From: Mobula hypostoma
Taxonomy: Eukaryota
Direction of reading: 5' to 3'
Length of the DNA: 64,000 nucleotides
Assembly: GCF_963921235.1 (NCBI RefSeq)
Contig: NC_086098.1
Span: 235,166,001-235,230,000, forward strand
Below, one piece after another: positions 1 to 35,755 of this stretch (positions within the stretch are counted from its first letter, which is position 1; each line of letters begins with the position of its first letter). Both the position numbers and the translations under genes were made by a program. The notes beneath the pieces were generated by a model, which ran no database searches, was not told the DNA's origin, and saw only the letters and a list, made by a program, of their open reading frames with translations.

Positions 1-2298
1 TTGTGGTTGAGCCCACTGGGGAAAGGCTATTCTGGATTGGGTGTTGTGTAATAAACGGAATTTGATCAGGAAGTTTAAGGTAAAGGAACTCTTGGGATGC
101 AGGATTAATAATATAACAGAATTCACACTACAATTTGAGAGGGAGAAGCTAAAGTCAGAGGTATTGGTATTACAATGGAGTAAAGGGAATTGTAGAGGCG
201 TGACAGAGGAGCGGTCAAAATTGATTGGAAGGGAACACTAGCAGGAAGAGCAGTAGAACAGCAGTTGTTGAAGTTTCTACAGGCAATTTGGAAGTGCCAA
301 ATAGATATATCTCAAAGAAAATGTATTCTAAAGGCAGGATGATGCAACCATGACAGGTAAGTCAAAAACAACATTAAAGTAAAAGAGAGGGCAGAATAGA
401 GCAGAAATTAGTGGGAAGTTAGAGGACTTGGGAAGTTTTTAAAACCAACAACAGGCAACTAAAAAGCCACAAGGAGGGAAAAGGTGAAAAATGAAGGTAA
501 GCTAGCCAACAATATCAAAGAGGAACCAAGTGCTTTTCAGATATATAAAGAATAAAAGAGAAGCAAGAGTGGATATTGGACCACTGGAAAATGATGCTGT
601 AGAGGTACTAATGGGTGACAAGGAAATTACAGGCGAACTGAATAGATACCTTGTATACATCTTCACTGTGGAAGACAGCAATATGCTGGAGGTTTGAAAG
701 TGTTGGAGGGCAGAAGTAAGTGCAATTGAAGAAGGTGTTTGTGAAGCTAAAAGGTATAAACACAGGTATATCACCTGTATGCCCAAGGGCTCTGAATGAG
801 GTGGCTGGAGAGATTGTGGAGCCATTTGTAATGATCTTTTAAGAATCACTAGATTCTGGCATGGTTTTGGGGGACTGAAAAATTGCAAATGTCACTCCAC
901 TCTTTAAGGAGGGAGGAAAGCAGAAGAAAGGAAATTATAGGCCAGTTAGCCTGACCTCAGTGGTTGAGAAAATATTGGAATCAATTGTTAAGCATGTGGT
1001 CTTAGGGCACATGATAAAAAAGGCCAAAGTCAGCATGCTTTCCTTAAAGGAAAATCTTGCCTGACAAATCTGTTGCAATTCTTTGAGGAAATTACATGCA
1101 GGATAGACAAAGGTGGATGTTGTGTGCTTAGATGTTCAGAAGGCCTTGTAAAAGGTGCCGCACATGAGGCTGCTTAACAAGTTATGAGCTCATGGTATTT
1201 TAAGGAAGGTACTAGCATAGACAGAGCATTGGCTGATTAGCAGGAGGCAAAGAGTGGGAATAAAGGGAGCATTTTCTGGTTGGCTGCCAATGACAAGTGG
1301 TGTTCTGAATGGGTCGGTGTTTGGCTTGCTTGTTTTTACTCTACATGTCAATGGTTTTGATGGAATTGATGGTTTTGTGACCAGGTTTCCGGATGATACA
1401 AAGATAGGTGGAGAGGCAGGTAGTGATGAGGAAGCAGCGAGGCTGCGGAAGGACTTGCACAGATTAGGAGAATGGGTAAAGGAGTGGCAGATGAAGCATA
1501 GCATAGGAAAGTGTATGGTTATGCACTTTGGTAAAAGGCACAAAAGCGTAGACTATTTTCTAAACCGGGCAGAAAATTCAAAAAACTGAGATGCAAAGGT
1601 ACTTGGGAGTTTTTGCACAGGATTCCCTAAAGGTTAACTTGCATGTTGAATCGGTGATGAGGAAGGCAAATGTAATGTTAGCATTCACTTCGAGAGGACT
1701 AGAATATAAAAACAAGGATGTAATGCTAAGGCTTTGTAAAGCACTGGGAAAGGCTTGCTTGGAGGATTGTGAGCAGTTTTGGGTGCATTATCTCAGAAAG
1801 AATGTGCTGACATTGGAGAAGGTTCAAAGGATGTTCAAGAGAATGATTCCAGGAATGAAAGGCATTTGATGGCTCTGGGCTTGTACTCAATGGAATTTAG
1901 AAGAATGGGGAAGAAACTCATTGAAATCTATTGAATATTGAAAGGTCTAGGTAGGGTAAATGAGAGGATGTTTCCAATAGTAGGAGAGTCTAGGACCAGA
2001 GGGCACAGCCTCAGAGTAGAAAGACATCCATTTAGAGTGGAGATCGGGAGTCATTTCTTTAGCAGAGGGTGATGAATCTGTGGAATTCATTTCCACAGAT
2101 GGCTGTGGAGGTCGGGTCATTGGGAGTGTTTAAGGTAGAAGTTGATGGTTTCTTCATTAGTCAGGGTGTGAAAGGTTATGGGGAGAAGGCAGGAGAATGG
2201 AATTGAGAGGAAAAATGAATCGGCCATGATGAAATGGTGAAGCAGACTTAATGGGTCAAGCTGCCTAATTCTGCTCCTATCTCTCATGGTGTTATGGC
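1..2298 (+). mobile_element. CR1 LINE, degraded ORF2 (RT) and 3' UTR
   Basis: Frame-broken CR1 RT peptides (GIKGAFSGWLPMTSGV, FPDDTKIGG, RGLEYKNKDVMLRL) and a CR1-type 3' end cctaattctgctcctat...ttatgg near 2265-2297. Confidence 0.9.
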
Positions 2299-2299
2299 C

Positions 2300-2691
2300 T
2301 TCTTAACAAACAATTAACTTGCATTCCAACTTTGAGAGGTCTATGGATATGGGCCCCAGGATTCCTCTAATCCTTCACACGTTTAAGAGTCCTGCCATTA
2401 ACCCTATAAGCTGCCTTCAAATTCAACCTTCCAAAGAGAACCAGCTCACTTTTCCTGGTTGAATTTCACCTGCCACTTCTCAGCCCAACTTTGCATCCTG
2501 TCAAGGTCCTGTTCTGACCTATGCCAACCCTCCGCACTATCCACAACTTCACCAACATCTGCCTCACAGGCTTACCTGCAGACTTACCCTCTACTTGCTC
2601 ATCCATGTCATTTATAAAAATCACAAAGAGTAGAGGATCCTAGAGCACCTTCAGTCACTGAGCTCCAGGCAGAATCCTCTCCATCTACTAC
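2300..2691 (-). mobile_element. Old CR1 fragment interrupted by the Gypsy element; continues at 15524-15680
   Basis: Sequence ...ccatctactac resumes as ctaccagcatctgccttctgtggc... beyond the far LTR. Confidence 0.7.
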
Positions 2692-2883
2692 TGTAGGTTT
2701 CCACAAACAAGATGAAGTGAGGCATTTATTGTTTATTGAACCCCAAAATCTACACAACAGAAGTGTCCAAAAACCTTTTACATAATAATGTCATCACATC
2801 AGACCGGCCTCTTAAAGCTGAACCCTAACTCGATGTTGGTGGTTGTGAATTATGTATATTTCAACCAATTATGTTACTCTACA
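2692..2883 (-). repeat. 3' LTR of the Gypsy element
   Basis: tgtaggtt...actctaca, alignable to 15333-15523. Confidence 0.9.
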
Positions 2884-4578
2884 CAGCACCACTCCACTTC
2901 CCCCCAACCTCCGTCACTGAAACCGGCACTGTGAGTCTGTCTGTCGAGCTCAGACAAGCCACCCAGCTCGTGTCCTGTGTTCCATGCAGAGGGCTCTGGC
3001 TTGTCTGGATGAGCATTGACACGTTCATGGTCATGTTGTGATGCCAGGGACATGGTAGCGCAATACTCCAAATCTTGGGGGGCTGGTTTAAGGTGATCTA
3101 CTGAAACACGTTCAGTTTATCTGTGATAAAAGTCTTTTTGCCTCATTCCATAGTGCAGAACGGGCCGTCATAAAGAGCCCTAAGGGGATGTGCACATTGG
3201 CAGGCAAAAACAAACGAGGCAGAACGTAGGCCAACAGGAACCCAAGAGCGTGCACGCTGTGATAGGAGGTAGGAATAGGTGAAAAGGAATTGAGTTTACT
3301 GAGGAGGGTGGAACGCTCTGGAGGGGCCGACCAGGTGTTCTTGGTGTCAGGAACAAAATCACCCGGTACTCATGACGACTGCCCGTATACCAACCAAGCC
3401 AAGGATGTCTGCAGGTCCTTCTTTGGAGCAATTCTGAGCCCCAGCAGGGCCCAGGAGAGCCACACATGCCAGCACTCATCGGTCAGGGAAGCTCTCAGAG
3501 CAGCCTTTAAAGGGCGGTGAAACTGCTCTCATAGGCTATTGGACTGCGGGTGATACGCCGTGATGTGATGTAGCCTAACACTGAGGTTCCAGGACATCGC
3601 AGCCCAGAGGTCTAAACTGAACTGGGATCATGGTCAGAGGAAATATCAGATGGGTTGCCAAACCAAGCAACCGAGGTGCTGATGAACACCCGAGCCACAT
3701 CTGCGGCCATCGTCAATGCTAGGGGAACAACCTCTGGCCATCTGGAGGTACTGTCCACCATGGTGAGAAGGTGCGTGAAACCACAGGAGGGGTTGAGGAC
3801 AACAAGGTCCACTTTGACATGGTTCAAACCATCGTTCAGGGACCTCAAAAGGAGCCAATGGTGCCTAAACCTGATGGTTAATTTTTGCCCACTGGCTCAC
3901 ACAAGCTGTAGTCCAATCGTGCACATCCTTTCTGAGGCCATGCCAAACAAACTTTACTCCAACCAGCTTCTGTGAGGCCCTCCCGCCTGGATGTGAGAGG
4001 CCACGTATGGAGTCGAAAACTGCCCGCCTCCAGTTTGCGGGCACGATGGGCGAGGGCGATCAGTTGAGACATCGCACAGGAGGTAAAGCCCAGCTTCCCT
4101 GAACTTCATGTAAGCCAACCGGAGGCTCGTGACTGCTGTTCAGTAAGCCTGGTCCTCTGAGTCAGTTCCTCGGTCGGCTGCCATGCCAGCGTAGTCAGCC
4201 CCAACGTGTATGGCCTGAACGGCTGGCTGTTCGGGGCAATCAGCCACAGCATTAATTTGTTCCTAAATACGTTGTGTATCAGTTGTGAACTCTGATATGT
4301 AGGCCATTTGGCGTTGCTGCCATGCAGACCAAGGGCCTGATATTTTGGCCATCGTGTGCACGAGCGGTTTGTGGTTAACGAACATGGTGAAATGGCGACG
4401 TTCTAGAAGACGACGAAACTGCTGTACTTCCTTTCGGGGGCAGAGATGCTGACTGAAGAAGGTGAGCGGCTGCCGTACGACTCCGGCCAGCTGTTCACAC
4501 ACAGCGCCCACAGCATAACCGGAGGCATCAGTTGTAATGGTTATGGGTATGCTGAAGAACAGGTGCGGCAGTAGGGTC

Positions 4579-7088
4579 CATAAGACATAGGAGCAGAATT
4601 AGGCCATTCAGTCCATCAAGTCTGCTCTGCCATTCCATCATGGCTGATCCTGGATCTCACTCAACTCCATACACTGCCTTCTCGCCATATCTTTTGATGC
4701 CCTGATCGATCAGGAAACTATCAACTTCCACTTTAAATATACCCACATATTTGGCCTCCACTGCAGTCTGTGGCAGAGTATTCCACAAATTCACTACTCT
4801 TTGGCTAAAAAAAAGCCTCCTTACCTCTGTTCTAAAGGGTGGCCCCTCAATTTTGAGGCTGTGTCCTCTAGTTCTGGATACCCCCACCATAGGAACCATC
4901 CTCTCCACATCCACCCTATCTAGTCCATTCAACATCTGGATCTGGTAGTTTTCAATGAGATCACCCCGCATTCTTCTAAATTCCAGTGAGTACGGGCCCA
5001 AAGCTGCTGAATGATCCACATGTTAACCCCTTCATTCCCGAACCATCCTCGTGAACCTACTAAGGACTCTCTCCAATGACAACACATCCTTTCTGAGATA
5101 CATGTCTCAAAACTGTTGATAATACTCCAAATGTGGCCTGAGTAGAGTCTTGTAAAGGTTCAGCATTATTTCCATCCAGTAGTTTTCTATAACCCTTGAA
5201 ATAAATGCCAAAATCGCCTTTGTCTTCTTTACCTCAGACTCAACCTGTAAGTTAACCTTCTGGGTGTCTTGCACAAGGAGCCCTAGGTCCCTTTACACCT
5301 CTGATATCTGAATTCACCTCCTCCCCCCCCCCCCGCCGCCATTGTTACTTAACAGATTATTCAGGCAAGATTTCCCTTTACAGAAACCATGCTGATTTTG
5401 ACTTATTTAATCATTAGTCTCCAAGTACCCCGAAACCTTATCCTTAATAACAGACTCCAACACTTCCCAACCACTGAGGTTAGGCTTACTGGCCTATAAT
5501 TTCCTTCCTTTTGCCTTAATCCCTTCTTAAAGAGTGGAGTGATATTTACAATTTTCCAGTCCTCCGGGACCATGCCAGAATCATGTGATTCTTGAAAGAT
5601 CATGACCAATGCATCCGTTATCTCTTCAGCAACCTCTCTCAGGACTCTAGAATGTAGTCCATCTGGTCCAGCTGATGTTTCAATCTCAAGACTTTTGAGT
5701 TTGCCTAGCAGTTTCTCCTTTGTAATAGCAATGGCACCCACTCCTCGTTCCTGACACTCGTGGACCTCTGGCACACTGCTAGTGTCCTGCACAGTGAAGA
5801 CAGGGGCAAAATTCATCTTGCCATTTCTTTCTCCCCCATTACTACCTCATCAGCATCATTTTCCAGTCGTCCAATATCAACTCTTGATATAACTGGGAAA
5901 ATGTTTAGTATCCTGCTTTATATTATTGGCTAGTTTGTCCTTATATTTCATCTTTTCCCTTCTTATAGCTTTTTAAGTTGCCTTTTGTTGGATTTTAAAA
6001 GCTTCCCAATCATCCAACTTCCCATTCACTTTTGCTACCTTACATGCGCTTTCCTTGGCTTTTATACAGTCAGTTCTTAACTTCCTTTGTCAGCCACGGT
6101 TGCCTACCCCTGCCATTTGAAAACAACTTCTGTGGGACATATTTATTTTGTGCCTTATGAACTATTCTCAGAAACTTCAGCCATCTCTGCTCTGCCATCA
6201 TCCCCACCAGTATCCTCCTCCAATCAATCTGGGCAAGCTCCTCTCTCATGATCTGTAATTCCCTTTATTCCCCTTCGATACTGATACATGTGACTTATGC
6301 TTTTCCTTCTCAAATTGCCATATGAATTCAATCATATTATGATCACTATCTCCTGAGGGTTAACACAGGAGATAACACAACACCCAACCTGAGATAACCT
6401 TTCCCCGAGTAGGCTCAAACATGAACTGCTCCAAAAAGCCATCTTGTAGGCATTTAACAAATTCCTTCTTGTGTCATCCAACACCAACCTGATGTTTCCA
6501 ATCCCCTTGCATATTGAAGTCCCCCATAATGTCCCAGATGTGACATTACCATTATTACATACCTTTTCCATTTTCCTTTGCAATCTCAACCCCACATCTT
6601 GGCTACTATTTGGAGGCCTATATTTGATTCCCATAATAGTATTTTAACCGTTGCAGTTTCTTAACTCCACTCACAAAGATTCAATGTTCTCTGACCCTAT
6701 GTCACTTCTTTCTAATGATGTAGTTCCATCTCTTACCAAGAGAGCCACACCACCGCCTCGGCCTTCCTGCCTGTCCTTTCGATACAAAGAATATCCTTTG
6801 ATGTTAAACTCCCAACTACGGCCTTCTTTCAGCCACGATTCAGTGATGCCCACAACATCATACCGGCCAATCTCTAACTGCACCACAAGCTCATCCACCT
6901 TATTCTGAATGCCACGTGTATTTAAATACAGCACCTTCAGCCCTAAATTCTTCACCATTTTGAATTTTACCCCTGTGGTACAATTTAACTCTTTGCTCTG
7001 TCTGCATTTGTACCCAGTCATAGGCTTGTCCTTCCTTACATTCATGTTACATGCATCATTTACTTGTAAACCACTGCCTCTTCCTCAG
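4579..7088 (-). mobile_element. CR1 LINE nested in Gypsy pol (endonuclease plus RT, internal deletion near 5340)
   Basis: 3' tail cataagacataggagcagaattaggcc. ORFs LKVLYLNTRGIQNKVDEL (APE), DWKIVNITPLFKKG...NYRPVSLTSVVGK, and SRTRGHSLKI. Confidence 0.9.
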
Positions 7089-12035: not shown

Positions 12036-15000
12036 CACTGTTCTATGTCCTAGTCTTAAGGTAAAAGAACCCTTAGGGGATAGTGATCATAATATGATAG
12101 ATTTCAGTCTGAAATTTGAGAAGGAGATGCTAAAATCAGAAGTATCAGTATTACAGTGGAGTAAAGGGAATTACAGAGGCAGGAGACAAGAGTTGGCCAG
12201 AAGTAATTGGAAAAGAACACTGGCAGGAATGCCGACAGAGCCACAGTGGCTGGAATTTCTGGAAGCAATTCGGAAGGCACAGGAGAAGGCAAAGAGGAAG
12301 AAGTATTCTAAAGGCAAGATGACACCACTGTGGCTAACAAAAGAAGTCAAAGCCAACATAAAAGCAAAAGAGAGGGCATATAATACAGCAAAGATTAGTC
12401 CGAAGATAGAGGATTGGGAAGCTTTTAAAAACCAACAGAAGGCAAATAAAAAAAGTTGTTAAGAAGGTAAAGAAAGAATTCGAAAGTAAGCTAGCTAATA
12501 ATATTAAAGTAGATATCAAAAGTTTCTTCAGATACATGAAGTGTAAAAGAGGGGCCAGAGTTGATATCAGACTGCTGGAAAACGATGTTGGAGAGGTAGT
12601 AATGGGGTCAACAAAATAGCGGATAAATTCAATAAGAATTTTGTGTCAGTCTTCACTGTGGAAGAGACTAGCAGTATGGTGGAAATTCCAGGTGTCAGAG
12701 GTCATACAGTGTGTGACGTCACCATTACTAATGCCAAAGTTCTTGGGAAACTGAAAGGTCTGAAGGTAGATAAGTCACCTGGACCAGATGGTATACACCT
12801 CAAGGTCCTGAAAGAGGTGGCTGAAGATATCGTGTAGGCAATAGTAATGATTTTCAAGAATCATTAGATTCTGGAATGTTTCTGAAGGACTGGAAAATTG
12901 CAAATGTCACTCCACCCTTTAAAAAGTTAGAGAGGCAGAAGAAAGGAAACTGTTGGTCAGCTAGTCTGACCTCAGTGGCAGGGAAGGTCTTGGAGTCGAT
13001 TATTAAGGATAAGGTCTCAGTGCACTTAGAGTCACATGATAAAATAGTCAGTATGGTTTCCTCAAGGTAGAATCTTGCCTGAAAAGTCTCTTGGAATTCT
13101 TTGAGAAGTAACAAGCAATATAGACAAAGGAGAATCAGTTGATGTGTACTTGGATTTTCAGAAGGCCTTTGACCAGGTGCCACACGTGAGACTGCTTAAC
13201 AAGCTACAAACCCGTGGTATTACAGGGAAGATTCTAGCATGGATAAATCAGTGGTTGATTGGCAGGAAGCAAAGTGTGGGTATAAAGGGAGCCTCTTCTG
13301 ACTGGCTGCTGGTGACTACTGGTGTTTCACAGGGGTCTGTGTTGGGACCAATTCTTTATAAGTTATATGTCAGTGATTTAGATAATGCAATTGATGACTT
13401 TGTTGCAACGTTTGCAGATGATATGAAGATAGGTGGAGGGGCAGATAGATTTGAAGTAGAGAAGCTATAGAAGGACTTAGATTAGGAGAATGGACAAAGA
13501 TGGAATACAGTGTTGGCAAGTGAATCGTCATGCACTTTGGTAGAAGAGATGAAAGGATTGACTACTTTCTAAATGGAGAGAAAATATTAAAAAACTGAGG
13601 TGTGAAGGGACTTGAGAGTCCTTGTGCAGGATCAGAATCAGAAAAAGGTTGGTTTGCAGACTATCAAGAAGACAAATGCAATGTTGGTCTTCATTGCTAA
13701 AGGGATTGAATTTAAGAGCAGGGAGGTTATGCTGCAACTGTATAGGGTATTGGCGAGGTCGCACCTGGAGTACTGCGTGCAGTTCTGGTCTCCTTACTTG
13801 AGGAAAGATATACTGGCTTTGGAGGCAGTGCAGAGGAGGTTCACCAGGTTGACTGCAGAGATGAGGGGGTTAACCTATAAGGAGAGATTGAGTCACCTGG
13901 GACTGTATTGGCTGGAATTCAGAAGAATGAGAGGAGATCTTATAGAAACATATAAAATTATGAAAGGGATAAAAAAAAGATAGAGGCAGGAAAGTTGTTT
14001 CCACTGGTAGGTGAGACTAGAAGTAGGGGACATCGCCTCAAGATCCAGGGGAGTAAATATGGGACGGAGATGAGGAGAAACTGCTTTTCCCAGAGAGTAG
14101 AGAATTTGTGGAATTCTCTGCCCAATGCAGCAGTGGCGGCTACCTCAGTAAATATATTTAAGACAAGGTTGGGTATATTCTTCCAGAGTAGGGGAATTAA
14201 GGGTTATGGGAAATAGGCGGGTAGGTGGAGATGAGTCCATGGTCAGATCAGCCATGATCTTCTTGTATAGTGGAGCAGGCTCGATGGGCTGAATGGCCTG
14301 CCCTTGCTCCTGTTTCTTATGTTCTTATATTTAAGGCAAAGCTTAATGAATTCTTGATTGATCAGGAGATGAAGGAATACGGAGGGAAGGCAGAGGAAAG
14401 GAGCTGAGAGGAGAATTGAATCAGCCTTGATAAAATGGCAAAGCAGATTCGATGGTCAGATAGCCTAGTTCTGCTCCTATATCTTATGGATCCTGCTGTC
14501 ACTAGCGAGGTTTCGTCGCTCTTCGCCTTCTCATCAATAGGCGATGGCGACGACGCACTCATTTGAACCTGTGTTCAACGTCGCCCTGAAAGGGGTCTGT
14601 GATGAACTGTACACGACCCTGGCAGCTGGAACCCACGGTGTTCACGGACCTCTGATGTCCCAGTGCGCGGGTACTGTCGAGGCTGCAAGACGGTCGGCAC
14701 TTCCTAGCATTCCTACTAAAGCGAGCGTGGTAAAAGTACAGGCCCCCGCGTTCTCCGTTTCTCAGCTGGGGCGGCGGGGCTCACTGAGGTCGAGAAAGGA
14801 GGAGGAATGATGCACCGCTACCTGGCTGAGTGTAGACTATCAGCCATTTTAGCAAGCGCCCTGGTGCCGTTTACAGGTGCATTAGAGAGGGCTATGCAAA
14901 CTTGATCGGGCACTTGCTGCATGGAGAGTTGTTTACAAATAAAACAAGGATGGTTGTTTACCAGGAGAGTCAGCGTGTGGTCAATTAGCGCTAATGTTTT

Positions 15001-26784: not shown

Positions 26785-28031
26785 CTGTTTTGGAATAAAA
26801 ACCAGAGTTACTCCATGGATGTGTACAGTGAACATTGTGGGCATTCCATATTAGCACAGAATGTGCATTGGCACTTGCAGGTTGTACCCAGCACATCCTC
26901 GTGTGTTGGTTGTTAATGCGGATAATGTGTTTTGACACAGTGCAGGTGATACATAACTCAGAAATCTGAGTGTGTAGTAGTGGGGCGGGTGTGACAGAGG
27001 AGGGTACTCGCTGCATTCAGCGGACCCACTTTTGACGGTAGAACGGACTCACTTCGACAAGTTGGAGCTGCTGTGGAGACTGCTCACTCATGGCTTTTCC
27101 AGCTGCCTCACCTCACAGGCCCTTCCCGTCCAAACCTCCAGCACCGTCTTTCCATAATCCAATTGGTCGGAAATCTCGACCGTTCAGGAACAGCTACTAT
27201 TCCTCAGCTACCAGGTTCTTGAACTGGTGGGGATAACGTCACTCACCCCCATCGCTGAACTGTTCCCACAACCTACGGACTCAACTTCCATGGAGGAGAG
27301 AGGGGGGGGTCAGAGAGTTTCTGTGTCTCCTGGTCACCAGTACACCAGTGGAATATGTGGGGAAACTGTTTAGTTATCGACGGGGATCAGAACCTTCCAG
27401 TGCGGTAACAAAGTTCCAGAGGGACCGGACTGTCAAATTAATCACACCATTATCATACTCCCCACAGCACTAACCTTCCCTGTTCCAACACCTCCAGCTA
27501 CCCCTGGAAACATTTGTCTAGATCAGGATCACAACTGTCCAGTGGTCCCAGATCACTGCCACCTGCCCCTGGGTTTCCGCTCCCTGCAGCTGTCCCTGCT
27601 ACGTCCAGTCATCCCAGATTATTGTCACCTGCCCCTGGGGGTTGTTTGCTCCCGGCAGTTGCCTCCCCTGTGTCCAGGAATCGGTAAACGGAGAGTTATT
27701 TTGCACGGAGAGCAGGCGATGGAAGAGGGTGACAGTTGAGGGCAGCGGTGAAGTGGAAATTCTCAGGCTGCCCGGACACGGAGTGGGCGGGACGGACGCG
27801 ATACAGTGCTGGGTTGGGCAGCTGGGATTAGAGAGACAGCGCTGCTCGGGCAGTCGGGTGTTATGTGGGTTACCCTGAGCTCTGCAACACTGCCTCTGCA
27901 CCGGTGGCAAAGGAGAGTCCAGGGGGCTCAAAGGTAATGGCCAGAGTGGAGATGGCACCCTGGCCCACTGCCCTGAGCTGGAATTCCCAGACCTGCCAAA
28001 GCAAGATTTCACCTGAAGCCTGGAAACTCAC

Positions 28032-28109
28032 AAAATGAGGAGAGAAGCGCCGGTCGAACTCTCGTTGTGCTAGGATGCCACCTTGTCCTGGAGCGCTGGT
28101 GTAACCCAT
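28032..28109 (-). CDS. SSR2: SSR2 exon 5 (78 nt)
   Basis: [26 protein letters not shown], with cttcag acceptor and gtgagt donor. Confidence 0.97.
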
Positions 28110-29144
28110 CTGAAGAAGAGGACACAAGGAGGTTATTGTAGGCTGATAGGACACACCCCATTCTGTGATGGGTTGAGATACTAGAGAGAGGGGTCACAGT
28201 CTGGACAACAGCCTGACCAGACGCACCTTCCCCACTACAGAACTACCTACACCTACTTCACATGAACAGAAGTACGAAACCACTAATGTCGGACCCGGTT
28301 AATCTGGAGGAACCCAAAGTCTGACAAATAAGATAAATCAATCCATCGACCACTGTGGCCTCCAACTGCACAACGATTTGTTTTAAATAAGACTTCTTGA
28401 CCAAGTTCTGACGGCCCCCATGAACAACGGCCTAGCCTTTCACATGGAGGGCAAACATAGAACATTCATTGTGTGCCAGTCTTGATGCCAATTGACATTC
28501 ACTGTCCCCCATAACCTTCCATTCCCTTCATATTAGCATGTCTAAGACCCTCAAACTCCACCAGACTGCCTGCATCCACCACTCCCCAGGTCATCAATTC
28601 CAGACACCTACACTCTCTGAGCAAAGAAACAAAAACTTCTTCCTCACCCCCTCCCTAACCTGGAAAATCACATCCACGGCTGCTTGACATTGCTACCCTG
28701 AGGGAAACATTCTGACTGTCTATCTTTAATCTATGCCTCTCATAATTTAAACTATCAGATCTGCCCTTAGCCTCTGATGCTCTGGGAAAGCAAAAGTCTA
28801 TCCAAACCTTCCTTATAGATTCCCGCCGCTGTCTGTACGTTCTCCCCGTGGATTCCCTCCAGGTGCTCCGGTGTCCTCCCACATTCCGAAGACGTACCAG
28901 TTGGTCATTGTAAATTGTCCTGTGATTAGGCAGGCATTAAATCGGGGGTTGCCGGGCAGCGTGGTTTGTTGGGCCAGAAGAGCCCGCTCTGCCCTGTATC
29001 TTAGTAAATAAATAAATATTTCCTCCAAACCGCCCAGCATCCCGCGGAACCTCTTTGTGCACCTTCTCCAGAGCTTCCTCGTCCTTCCTGTAATGGGGTG
29101 ACCAGAACTGCACAAAAGTATGGTCTGACAGGAGTTTTATATCT

Positions 29145-29338
29145 GGGGTGTACGGGGTGGCAGGGAGGGGTAGCACCTCTGGTGGGGGAACATGTCACGT
29201 CCTTTTCAAGGTGGTTGGTCCATCTTTGGTCCCCACCTGGCACTCAGCTCTCACCTGTGGCTCCCCGTAGCTGTTTGCATGCGACAGTGGCCACACCCCG
29301 GGCAACGGCTTCGACAAGCCGGCTAAACCAGGTGAGGG
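29145..29338 (+). ncRNA. Predicted HDV-like self-cleaving ribozyme
   Basis: Manual nested double-pseudoknot pairing: P1 29145-51/29293-99, P2 29250-57/29329-36, P3 29259-61/29290-92, P1.1 CC/GG, P4 29306-11/29316-21, J4/2 GCTAAAC. Confidence 0.65.
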
Positions 29339-29698
29339 TAGCCGACGGGTCTCAAACCCTCGGTGAGATAGGGAGTCGTCTATCCCAGCACGTGAAGACA
29401 GACTCCGGCAGATTGAGCGGACGAGACCAATGGAAGGTCCAACGGTCAAGAAGACGGTCTCTGCAAGCGTTGTGGAACGTGTAGAGCAGGACAAGACACA
29501 GAAGACGTCCTGGTCATCCACTGTGCTTAGTCCCATCTCCAGCCGTTTCGACTCTGTCTTGCACTGGATCCAGATGGGAATTGGGAAGAGAGAGTGAGGC
29601 TGACGCTGCGCAACTCTCCCTCACTTAAATCCAAATCACGCGCTAGTCTCGACACCATCATTATGGTGTCGAGGTCCTCATCGACGACGACGATGGAC
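29145..29698 (+). mobile_element. ~550-bp non-autonomous retroposon (SINE/SIDE-like) with a 5' HDV-like ribozyme fold, 3' hairpin and (GAC)n tail
   Basis: Inserted into CR1. Starts GGGGTGT. 3' stem ctcgacaccat/atggtgtcgag near 29648-29673, then gacgacgacgat. Confidence 0.7.
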
Positions 29699-29998
29699 AA
29701 ACACCACACCATCTGACTGCATGACTTCCTTACTTTTATACTCAAGACCCCTACCAATGAAAGCAAGCATGGCCTCCTTATCCACGTAGCCTCAATGCCG
29801 TTGCCACTCTGTAAAAAGTCTCTGGCTGTCTACTCTATGCCTCTTATCATCTTGTACCCCTTTATCAGGTCAGTCACTTCTCACCCTCGGTTACTCCAGT
29901 GAGGAACAAAGCCTGACCCTCAGCCCGGCTGCGACTCCAGCACCTTCCCCATGGTCTGTACGGTCCCGAGCCCCGTGCGGGAGAGGGAGAGCACTTAC

Positions 29999-30107
29999 CA
30001 CCACCGGACCACCTTCCTGGGCCAGGTAGGAAACAGTTGCCGAAGTGAAGTTGAAGTAGCCAGCCTTCAAAGGCCGCAGCACCACGGTGTGGGTAACATT
30101 ACTAGCT
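29999..30107 (-). CDS. SSR2: SSR2 exon 4 (109 nt)
   Basis: [36 protein letters not shown], gtaagt donor. Confidence 0.97.
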
Positions 30108-30719: not shown

Positions 30720-31432
30720 GTCATGCACTTTGATAGAAGGAGAAAACCAATAAGTTATTTTCTAAATGGAGAGAAAATACAGAAGTCTGAGGTGCAAAGG
30801 GACTTGTGAGTCCTCATGCAGGATTCCCTAGGTTAATTTGCAGGTTGAGTCAGTGGTGAAGACGACAAATGTGATGTTAGCATTCATTTCAAGAGGACTA
30901 GACTGTGACAGGATGTAATACTGAAGCTCTAGGAAAGGATGTGCTGACGGTTATGAAAATGATTCTGGGAATGAAAAGGTTATCGTATGAGGAGCATTTG
31001 ATGGCTCTGGGCCTGCAGTGGTTGGAATTTAGAAGAGTAAGGGGTGGGGAGGGGGAGATCTCATTGAAACCTATTGAATGTTGAAAGGCCTGGATAGAGT
31101 GGCTGTGGAGAGGATGTTTCCTATGGTGGAGGAGTCTAGGACCAGAGGGCACAGCCTCAGAGTAGAGGGATGTCCACTTAGAACAGAGTTGTGGAGAAAT
31201 TTCTTTAGTCAGAAGGTGGTGAATCTGTGGAATTCATTGAAATGGGACAGCTGTGGAGGCCTAGTCATTGAGTATAATCAGAGCGTAGTTTGATAGGTTC
31301 TTGATTAGTCAGGGCATAAAAAGTTACAGGGAGAAGGCAAGAATGGGGTTGAGAGGGAAAATAAATCAGCCATGATCAAATGGCAAAGCAGACTTGATGA
31401 CCAAATGGCTGAATGATGCTCGCATCTCCTAT
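30720..31432 (+). mobile_element. CR1 3' fragment inside the U12 intron
   Basis: LKGLDRVAVERMFPMVEESRTRGHSLRV...FFSQKVVNLWNSL. Confidence 0.85.
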
Positions 31433-31909
31433 AGTTCCAAAACCCCGGTATCTGGGACCTGTGTCCACTCAGCTACACTGGGCAGGACACATGATGCCAG
31501 GCACTCTGCCCCAAGGGTATGGCAGATGCTGGAGAACGGAGCAGATCATGCTGCAGCTGTAGGGGGAAAGGAGGGAAGGGGTAGAGGAACTGTCTATGTT
31601 TTGTATCGAAACCCTGTCAGGACGGATGCTCGAACCGCTGAGACTTCTAACTACACACCAAACGCCATCCCGGGTGACAGGTCCAACACCATTCTCACGT
31701 TCCAGTGGAATCTCTGGCCCGTAACCCCAGTGAGTGTGGAAGGAATGTTTGAACGATTTTGAGAACCTCATTCCGAACTCCTTCCCCAACTGTGGCAATA
31801 AATCACCCTCAATGCCACGTTGAAACCTCTCCAACCCTCTCTCCAATACAGATTCACGAACCACACCCACCCGACCGGCAACAGCCCCTCTCAAACATAC
31901 GCACACCCC

Positions 31910-34849: not shown

Positions 34850-35755
34850 TCATAAGATCATAAGACATAAGAGCAGAATTAGGCCATTCAGCCCAGAGTC
34901 TGCTCTGCTATTCCATCATGGCTAATTTACTATTCTGCTCAACCACATTCTCCATAAACAACTTACAATATGTTGAACTCAGTACTTTGATTTATGAAGA
35001 CCAATGTGCCAAAAGCTTTCTTTATGACCCTGTCTAGCTGTGACACCATTTTCAATGAATTATGGACCTGTTTTCCCAGATCCCCTTGTTCTGCTGCTCT
35101 TCTCAATGCCCCACTGTGTAAGACCTACCCTGGTTGGTCCTACTGAAGTGCAACATCTCGGAGTTGTCTGCATTAACTTCCATCTGCCGTTTTTCAGCCC
35201 ATTATTCCAGCTGGTTCAGATCTTCCCCCACCCCCACCACAAACTCTGACAGTCTTCCTCGCTGACCTCTACACACCCAATGTTGGTGTCATCCACAAAT
35301 TTTAGATCCATTTAACCACATTATCATCCAGATCACTGACATAGATGAGAAAAAACAACGGACTCAGAACCGACCCTTGTGGTACACCACTGGTCACAGG
35401 CCTCCATTCAGAGAGGAAACCACCTACTACCACTCTCTGGCTTCTTCCACAAAGCCAATATCTAATCCAATCTACTACCTCATCTTGAATGTCAAGCGAC
35501 TGAAACTTCCTGACCAGCGTCCCATACGGAACCTTGTAACAGGCCTTGTTAAAGTCCATGTAGACAACGACCACTGGTTTGCCTTCATCAACTTTCCTGG
35601 TAACTTCCTCGAAAAGCTCTATAAAGTTGGTTAGACACGACCTACCAGGCACAAGACGACGCTGACTATTCCTAATCAGCCCACGTCTATCCAAATACTC
35701 ATCTATCCCGTTCCTTTAGATCACCTTCCAATAACCTTCCCACAACTGATGTCAG
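34850..35755 (-). mobile_element. CR1 fragments in SSR2 intron 1
   Basis: [29 protein letters not shown], and a (cataag)n tail near 34850. Confidence 0.85.

Follow-up and report, generated by a model that had tools for sequence, protein, structure and literature searches.

What kind of mobile element begins, to the base, where an RNA is predicted to cut itself? The question is raised by an insert in the window analyzed here, a 64-kb stretch of Mobula hypostoma NC_086098.1 in which all coordinates below are positions. An initial reading made from the letters alone (the sequence-only reading) had assigned this insert to a promoter-less family of short interspersed nuclear elements (SINEs) headed by a ribozyme like that of hepatitis delta virus (HDV). 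Part of this proposal has lasted, namely a ribozyme-type head on a non-coding retroposon; the SINE identity has not, and gives way to derivation from a long interspersed nuclear element (LINE). We read 29145-29710, with a probability of roughly 0.7, as a deletion derivative of an RTE-like LINE headed by a large HDV-like self-cleaving ribozyme. Our comparisons draw on contigs from other assemblies that carry relatives of the window element (loci L129-L141).

The predicted ribozyme fold

The first 195 nt of the element are predicted to fold like an HDV-type ribozyme, and all pairings and coordinates listed in the sequence-only reading are present in the sequence. The components of the model are as follows.

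29145-29151, + strand: P1 5' strand, GGGGUGU, with predicted cleavage just 5' of G29145 (7/7 pairing, invariance in all lineages, target duplications)
29155-29245, + strand: P1.2, a peripheral hairpin domain filling J1/2 (RNAalifold consensus, covariation)
29247-29257, + strand: P2 5' strand, eight Watson-Crick pairs at 29250-57 and three extending pairs (pairing, descriptor, RNAalifold, compensatory change)
29259-29261, + strand: P3 5' strand, GGC (pairs with 29290-92)
29262-29289, + strand: L3, UCCCCGUA followed by a 5-bp hairpin (29270-74/29284-88, loop UUGCAUGCG) and then G (conserved across lineages)
29290-29292, + strand: P3 3' strand, GCC (pairs with 29259-61)
29293-29299, + strand: P1 3' strand, ACACCCC (no variation in the 7 sequences having both strands)
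29300-29305, + strand: J1/4, GGGCAA, its first GG the proposed P1.1 partner of C29263-C29264 (near-invariant; resembles the AGGCAAC consensus of Rfam RF02682)
29306-29321, + strand: P4 hairpin, CGGCUU/AAGCCG (29306-11/29316-21), loop CGAC (85% of cells paired)
29322-29328, + strand: J4/2, GCUAAAC, with candidate catalytic C29323 (pattern kept; like GGCUAA of RF02682)
29329-29339, + strand: P2 3' strand, CAGGUGAG plus GGU (pairing, RNAalifold)

P1 joins GGGGTGT at 29145-51 to ACACCCC at 29293-99 by seven Watson-Crick pairs out of seven. In P2, CTCACCTG (29250-57) pairs with CAGGTGAG (29329-36) at all eight positions, and the helix can be extended by three pairs (G.U, C-G and U.G) to 29247/29339. 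The helices are flush and follow the order P1-5', P2-5', P3-5', L3, P3-3', P1-3', P1.1/J1/4, P4, J4/2, P2-3', that is, a nested double pseudoknot; this order is kept in the window, L130-type, L131, L137 and L141 lineages. The candidate catalytic C29323 lies within G-C-U-A-A-A-C, a cytosine followed by purines comparable to C75-G-A-A in HDV. The inner pairs of P4 are loose, as is usual for this helix.

L3 departs from the canonical form in carrying the 5-bp hairpin, with stem strands GCUGU/ACAGU (29270-74/29284-88). The sequence-only reading had flagged it as unusual, and it proves to be a real and conserved feature of the family rather than a peculiarity of the window copy. Apart from a G.U pair in this hairpin, that copy agrees with the family core; the family consensus differs in the core mainly by T to C at 29288, giving a stem with 5/5 Watson-Crick pairs. 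We considered the hairpin as an alternative P3 and rejected it, reasoning on the sequence: GGC/GCC is flush with P1-3' and places UCCNNG where L3 should open. The hairpin loop (29275-29283) holds a self-complementary octamer, UGCAUGCR, kept in the window, L130-type, L131 and L137 lineages and missing from L141, for which a kissing-loop or dimerization role is conceivable. Directly 3' of the ribozyme, at 29342-29363, stands another conserved hairpin, CCGA..UCGG enclosing GGGU/ACCC, whose upper stem has been exchanged for other pairing bases in the L130 lineage (CCGAUG/CAUCGG).

Conservation, covariation and chance expectation

Our alignment comprises nine sequences, representing five to six lineages, with the structure written in pseudoknot brackets. 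Pairing is found in 95.1% of cells of the fold core, compared with 27-55% after sliding of the 3' partners; because the structure comes from the window sequence itself, the share of paired cells is inflated. The fold is conserved in diverged relatives. The 5' strand of P1 (GGGGUGU) is invariant in all lineages. There is one compensatory exchange in P2 (U-A to A-U, L130 lineage) and one in the L3 hairpin (G-C to A-U, L131), the hairpin itself being kept in all lineages. Pairing in P3 and P4 is preserved through G.U changes, including G-C to G.U in P3 of L137. An independent RNAalifold consensus contains P2, P3, the L3 hairpin and P4.

The single-stranded positions tell a similar story. L3 reads UCC-NN-G-WA, with NN being CC, UA, GA, AC or, in organism F, AA: U29262, C29263, C29264 and G29267 are invariant, as is the GG at 29300-01, and the only variable positions are the fourth and fifth of L3. 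The same two positions are free in HDV and CPEB3. GGGCAAC is invariant except in a degenerate copy (L138-140). The J4/2 pattern G-C-[U/A]-[A/G]-A-A-C is kept, and the catalytic C is found in 8/9 aligned sequences, the exception being that same copy. It occurs identically in three metagenome assemblies (L138, L139 and L140, from JGI 3300030235, ERZ23500279 and ERZ27276717), has U in place of the catalytic C and a broken J1/4 and P4, and presumably represents host DNA in those samples. An nhmmer search with the core profile detected no additional copies in the fetched loci.

The sequence-only reading had put J1/2 at about 100 nt. Rather than a loose linker, it is filled by a structured domain, which RNAalifold folds as one long hairpin at 29155-29245 (P1.2). 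In P1.2, 10 of the 31 pairs have changes in both partners, a number that 5/500 shuffles reach, and 89.5% of cells are paired, compared with 37-50% when the partner is slid. Covariation support is therefore good for P1.2; for the catalytic core it is thin.

Could the HDV-like fold be a chance look-alike in a G+C-rich LINE 5' untranslated region (UTR), its conservation reflecting recent common descent? Our descriptor was purposely permissive, allowing G.U pairs, a J1/2 of as much as 130 nt and an L3 of as much as 35 nt. In shuffled sequence it yields about nine weak matches per 128 kb; in the window itself it returns a handful of weak matches, among which the candidate at 29145 is clearly the best. 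That independent lineages are few and that the structure was derived from the window sequence also speak for coincidence. Folds of comparable quality (P2 of at least 8 bp and an all-Watson-Crick P1), however, are expected only 0.033 times per 128 kb, from 60 dinucleotide shuffles of the window. When the G+C-rich first 220 nt of the element itself are shuffled, they appear in 2/3000 cases, and a match of any quality starting at the first base appears in 4/3000. Such folds are therefore not a routine by-product of composition. Moreover, the window and L130 lineages share about 89% identity in the core (a manual count on the alignment), compared with 73-77% over the whole element; the observed changes preserve pairing, P1.2 covaries, and P1 begins at the first base as defined by target duplications. 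A search with 4227 Rfam families brought up a single ribozyme model, the HDV model RF02682, in two diverged copies, with best matches of 11.6 bits (window) and 16.9 bits (L137) over the J1/4-P4-J4/2 half (GGCAACGG...CCGGCUAA). We consider coincidence improbable.

The exact 5' end and the boundaries of the element

The boundaries of the window copy are as follows.

29141-29144, strand not applicable: target-site duplication, 5' copy, ATCT (the same 4 nt at 29711-14)
29145-29710, + strand: whole non-autonomous retroposon, 566 nt (depth step and matches to LINE 5' UTRs)
29711-29714, strand not applicable: target-site duplication, 3' copy, ATCT (matches 29141-44)

ATCT is found at both 29141-44 and 29711-14, and the element is therefore 29145-29710. 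The sequence-only reading had placed the same 5' end and stopped at 29698; the tail in fact continues as GGACAAACACCACACC to 29710, 12 nt further. In the window copy, as in L131 and L133, the target duplication (ATCT, TTATGTCGT and ATGTGTCATGT, respectively) is followed directly by GGGGTGT, so that the 5' end lies at G1. In L129 the duplication CTGAAGATC is followed by GGGTGT, with the end at G2, one base short, and in L135 the duplication CTAACATGT is followed by 7 extra bases and then GGTGT. The duplications measure 9-11 bp in L131, L133 and L129 and 4 bp in the window copy. Unrelated flanks meet GGGGTGT in L130, L132, L137, L138-140 and L141. Target duplications and flanks thus agree on a start at GGGGTGT, as the sequence-only reading had anticipated; ends well upstream were not encountered in these loci, and the family begins where the HDV-like fold is predicted to cleave.

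A 9-nt unit, GGGGTGTCA, is present twice in the L130 lineage (L130:10216-10233, L132:6042-6059) and once in L133 (6012) and L134 (6051), which begin at their single unit. Whether one or two units are present, the first base of the element is the first base of the sequence complementary to P1-3'. In the window the second unit (within 29145-29159) reads GGGGTGG and forms the base of P1.2. P1-3' (ACACCCC) and the 3' strand of P1.2 (CACUC) are each able to pair with either unit, which suggests alternative registers or cleavage sites and fits copies beginning at 29154.

A deletion derivative of an RTE-like LINE

Relatives of the element came to light through a protein-database search with a spurious open reading frame (ORF) running through the ribozyme region (29146-29481). 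It matched 13 equally spurious "proteins," and the contigs of these gave the LINE loci. In seven loci from two assemblies (L129-L135, including L131), a collinear homolog of 29145-29657 (73-77% identity by blastn) forms the 5' UTR of a LINE and is followed, after 400-640 nt, by a single ORF in the same orientation. Four loci have this ORF intact (1069-1076 aa), and the other three have it in pieces. The intact protein carries an apurinic/apyrimidinic-type endonuclease domain (Exo_endo_phos) from residue 7 and a reverse transcriptase domain (RVT_1) at residues 555-825; its ESM Atlas neighbors are chordate endonuclease and reverse transcriptase proteins without clade names. The whole LINE measures 4.03-4.09 kb and has a 3' UTR of about 40 nt ending in GAC/AAC-type repeats. 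A single ORF with N-terminal endonuclease and reverse transcriptase, no ORF1 and a tiny repeat-ended 3' UTR is the architecture of RTE elements. Downstream of the ribozyme, the window element contains the following.

29340-29647, + strand: remainder of the LINE 5' UTR-derived body, non-coding (collinear blastn to LINE 5' UTRs)
29648-29673, + strand: 11-bp stem-loop (29648-58/29663-73) at the deletion junction (inverted self-match)
29674-29710, + strand: LINE-type 3' terminus, GAC repeats (29682-93) followed by an A/C-rich end (aligns with LINE ends)

The body (29340-29647) holds only short ORFs, none with a protein-family match. The last 37 nt (29674-29710) align with the final 35-40 nt of the L129, L130 and L131 LINEs, directly after the stop codon. 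The element is thus collinear with the LINE at both ends, lacks its coding region and is flanked by a target duplication. From the matches to the 5' UTR and the 3' terminus we read it as a non-autonomous, internally deleted LINE, composed of about 505 nt of 5' UTR, the 11-bp stem-loop and about 40 nt of 3' end. The stem-loop and the GAC repeats had both been noted in the sequence-only reading, which had further suggested a partner LINE sharing the 3' hairpin. A partner LINE with a shared 3' end does exist, but the hairpin is absent at the corresponding place in the LINE copies from other assemblies. An independent SINE family with an unknown partner, the alternative envisaged at the outset, is not what these alignments describe.

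The high copy number, short length and LINE-like 3' end of the element would also suit an ordinary SINE transcribed by RNA polymerase III, with an overlooked head derived from tRNA, 5S or 7SL RNA. As the sequence-only reading had noted, no tRNA-like head is apparent: ARAGORN finds no tRNA, and Rfam searches at E values up to 10 give no tRNA, 5S, 7SL or snRNA match. Moreover, the entire 5' 505 nt are collinear with the LINE 5' UTR. We therefore rejected a canonical SINE with a polymerase III-derived head, a reading to which we give almost no weight.

Family size and subfamilies

In contigs from sequencing runs, the family is present at high copy number in at least eight organisms (designated A-D, F, M, N and P). 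In four DNA runs, each from a different organism, contigs accumulate over 29143-29703, where summed depth is 10-100x that of neighboring bins. The insert is thus, as proposed earlier, a member of a non-coding retroposon family, and this family is large. For organism F, summed contig depth rises from 26 (29125-44) to 6237 (29145-64) and falls to about 1 after 29704. Summed depth divided by the contig depth of single-copy flanks gives copies on the order of 10^4, to be taken as an order of magnitude and not as a copy number.

The family is not uniform. The major subfamily in organism F has UCCAAG in L3. Many contigs break or have an extra C after 29561 (about 1/3 of depth), and loose contig ends on both sides of 29562 mark a subfamily or an indel hotspot in the family body (29555-29562). 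Another large subfamily is too diverged upstream of 29224 to align (29192-29224; loose-end consensus GTCGTGTCCATTCTGGGGCAGCTCACTCAC); this segment lies in the apical part of P1.2, where variation is expected. There is no second copy of the element in the window by blastn, and scanning metagenome and viral contig collections for exact 16-mers returned 128 loci, all chance matches in unrelated DNA.

Is the conserved structure a self-cleaving ribozyme?

Several observations weigh against a self-cleaving ribozyme of RTE-like origin. HDV-like ribozymes have a short, unstructured L3 of about 7-8 nt; here L3 is 28 nt long with a conserved 5-bp hairpin (29270-88), a 19-nt insertion that sits inside the active-site loop after its eighth nucleotide. 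A G1.U wobble at the cleavage-site pair is typical of HDV and CPEB3, and G29145-C29299 is instead a G-C pair in all 7 sequences with both strands. In the literature searched on HDV-like ribozymes, neither feature is described, no precedent for a hairpin insertion in L3 was found, and nothing specific turned up on this variant in sharks or fish. A minor subfamily has GGUACAC where GGGCAAC is expected. P1 never varies and thus offers no covariation support, and covariation in the core amounts to two single events among only five to six lineages. The minimum free energy fold of the 201-nt region 29145-29345 is no more stable than shuffles (z = 0.18), so stability argues neither way. Rfam gives no family match at the gathering score for the window or its relatives, RF02682 appearing only below threshold (gathering score 44); two large insertions break the Rfam models. 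Finally, the parent LINE is called RTE-like from its architecture only.

Some of these points favor an alternative in which a genuine conserved structure at the 5' end lacks self-cleavage or has lost it. An internal promoter would then set the GGGGTGT start, and the fold would serve, for example, translation initiation or ribonucleoprotein assembly. The G1-C pair in place of G.U, together with the bulky L3 insertion, could cripple catalysis; the absence of an Rfam match above threshold and of covariation in P1 is in keeping with this, and a fixed start site predicts an exact 5' end equally well. Activity like that of an internal ribosome entry site has also been credited to HDV-like ribozymes (PMC6765202). 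However, the invariant sequences are those that catalysis needs: the J4/2 cytosine, UCC..G of L3 and GG for P1.1. In addition, copies with one or two GGGGTGTCA units both start at the unit complementary to P1, as a ribozyme choosing either unit would easily explain, and the literature describes ribozyme-bearing RTE and baggins elements as lacking promoters (PMC6765202). On balance we regard a non-cleaving structure as unlikely, though a stronger contender than coincidence, and retain the self-cleaving ribozyme.

Comparison with known ribozyme-headed elements

The proposed arrangement has clear counterparts. RTE and baggins elements, described as promoter-less and co-transcribed with host sequences, begin exactly with HDV-like ribozymes (PMC6765202), which also occur in R2, R4 and L1Tc (PMC6765202, PMC3774820) as well as in non-autonomous derivatives of LINEs (PMC3414825, PMC3383444). 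Such derivatives include the SIDEs (internally deleted R2, PMC3414825) and NARTc (truncated L1Tc, PMC3383444), which likewise keep the parent's 5' HDV-like ribozyme and 3' end and rely on the parent's protein. They differ in LINE clade, R2 being rDNA-specific and L1Tc/ingi trypanosomal whereas the parent here is RTE-like; unlike them, the window family is dispersed (the window copy lies in an intronic CR1) and has a far higher copy number. The 5' ribozymes of R2 also resemble the window element in that an HDV-like fold with few invariant active-site positions defines the 5' end (PMC3774820). The distance from P1 to P1' in R2 ranges from 23 to >700 nt (PMC3774820), and the long J1/2 here is therefore not unusual. 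R2 ribozymes often cleave upstream, in 28S, while the predicted site of the window element is its own first base.

Among individual ribozymes, a close counterpart in architecture is drz-Agam-2. Like the ribozyme of the window family, it heads a single-ORF, presumably promoter-less LINE, folds as a nested double pseudoknot with a large P1.2 in J1/2 and an extended P2, and has been proposed to free the element RNA from a co-transcript. Ruminski et al. (2011) reportedly mapped drz-Agam-2 to RTE retrotransposons of Anopheles gambiae. The likeness is one of architecture, and there are differences: the window element resides in a vertebrate host (SSR2, CR1 LINEs) rather than an insect, and its family has the conserved 5-bp L3 hairpin, G1-C and a highly amplified deletion derivative. 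In Agam-2 ribozymes, the structured P1.2 and extended P2 "pinch" P1/P2 together and make cleavage faster by nearly three orders of magnitude (PMC4908430).

Genomic HDV and the Faecalibacterium prausnitzii ribozyme (RF02682) share with the window element the helix order and an L3 opening with UCCNNG. J4/2 of RF02682 is GGCUAA, as in the window element, and its J1/4 consensus is AGGCAAC as opposed to GGGCAAC; genomic HDV has GGGCAAC, identical to the window element. Unlike both, the window element has a J1/2 of about 100 nt, a 28-nt L3 with a hairpin and a G-C pair at the base of P1.

Genomic context

The host of the insert is a minus-strand CR1-like LINE, which the element interrupts; sequencing runs contain insert-free CR1 copies, in which about 29114 connects with about 29719. 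ORFs on the minus strand on either side match Pfam PF05753 (TRAP_beta, SSR2).

27870-28154, - strand: SSR2 (TRAP-beta) exon ORF (PF05753 profile positions 116-155)
29891-30085, - strand: SSR2 (TRAP-beta) exon ORF (PF05753 profile positions 90-119)

Because these exons flank the element on the minus strand, it is intronic and antisense to SSR2, in agreement with the sequence-only reading, and being antisense it cannot cut the SSR2 pre-mRNA. Beside the insert, on the minus strand at 28830-28990 within the CR1-like element, is a different short repeat with moderate contig depth, presumably akin to a common SINE of cartilaginous fishes. Another interspersed repeat has several diverged copies (64-80% identity) at 30720-31440, 1500-5300, 13500-14500 and 34860-34950.

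Implications

We propose that the element would be transcribed within longer host or read-through transcripts and that its ribozyme would cut just 5' of G29145, creating the exact 5' end. A LINE reverse transcriptase might then recognize the shared 3' end and insert copies of the RNA at new sites through target-primed reverse transcription, and new copies would consequently start at GGGGTGT. In this scheme catalysis, the lack of an own promoter and mobilization in trans are what we infer.

It is established that RTE, R2, baggins and L1Tc elements carry HDV-like ribozymes at their 5' ends, and the principle is not new. Tentatively, and with somewhat less than even confidence, we suggest that the family represents a new and active subclass of HDV-like ribozymes, defined by a conserved L3 hairpin (often with a self-complementary UGCAUGCA loop) and P1.2, that heads an RTE-like LINE and its ~10^4-copy derivative in vertebrate genomes. 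In that case such ribozymes would systematically escape current descriptors and Rfam models, and thousands of intronic sense copies could cleave host transcripts.

Were cleavage to be confirmed, L3 would be seen to tolerate a whole hairpin, and the motif definition would widen, explaining why covariance models and descriptors miss it. Comparison of the LINE with its derivative would show which RNA parts are sufficient for mobilization in trans, namely the ribozyme with the 5' UTR and the last 40 nt. A vertebrate genome would then hold tens of thousands of potentially self-cleaving units, and their orientation in introns could be under selection.

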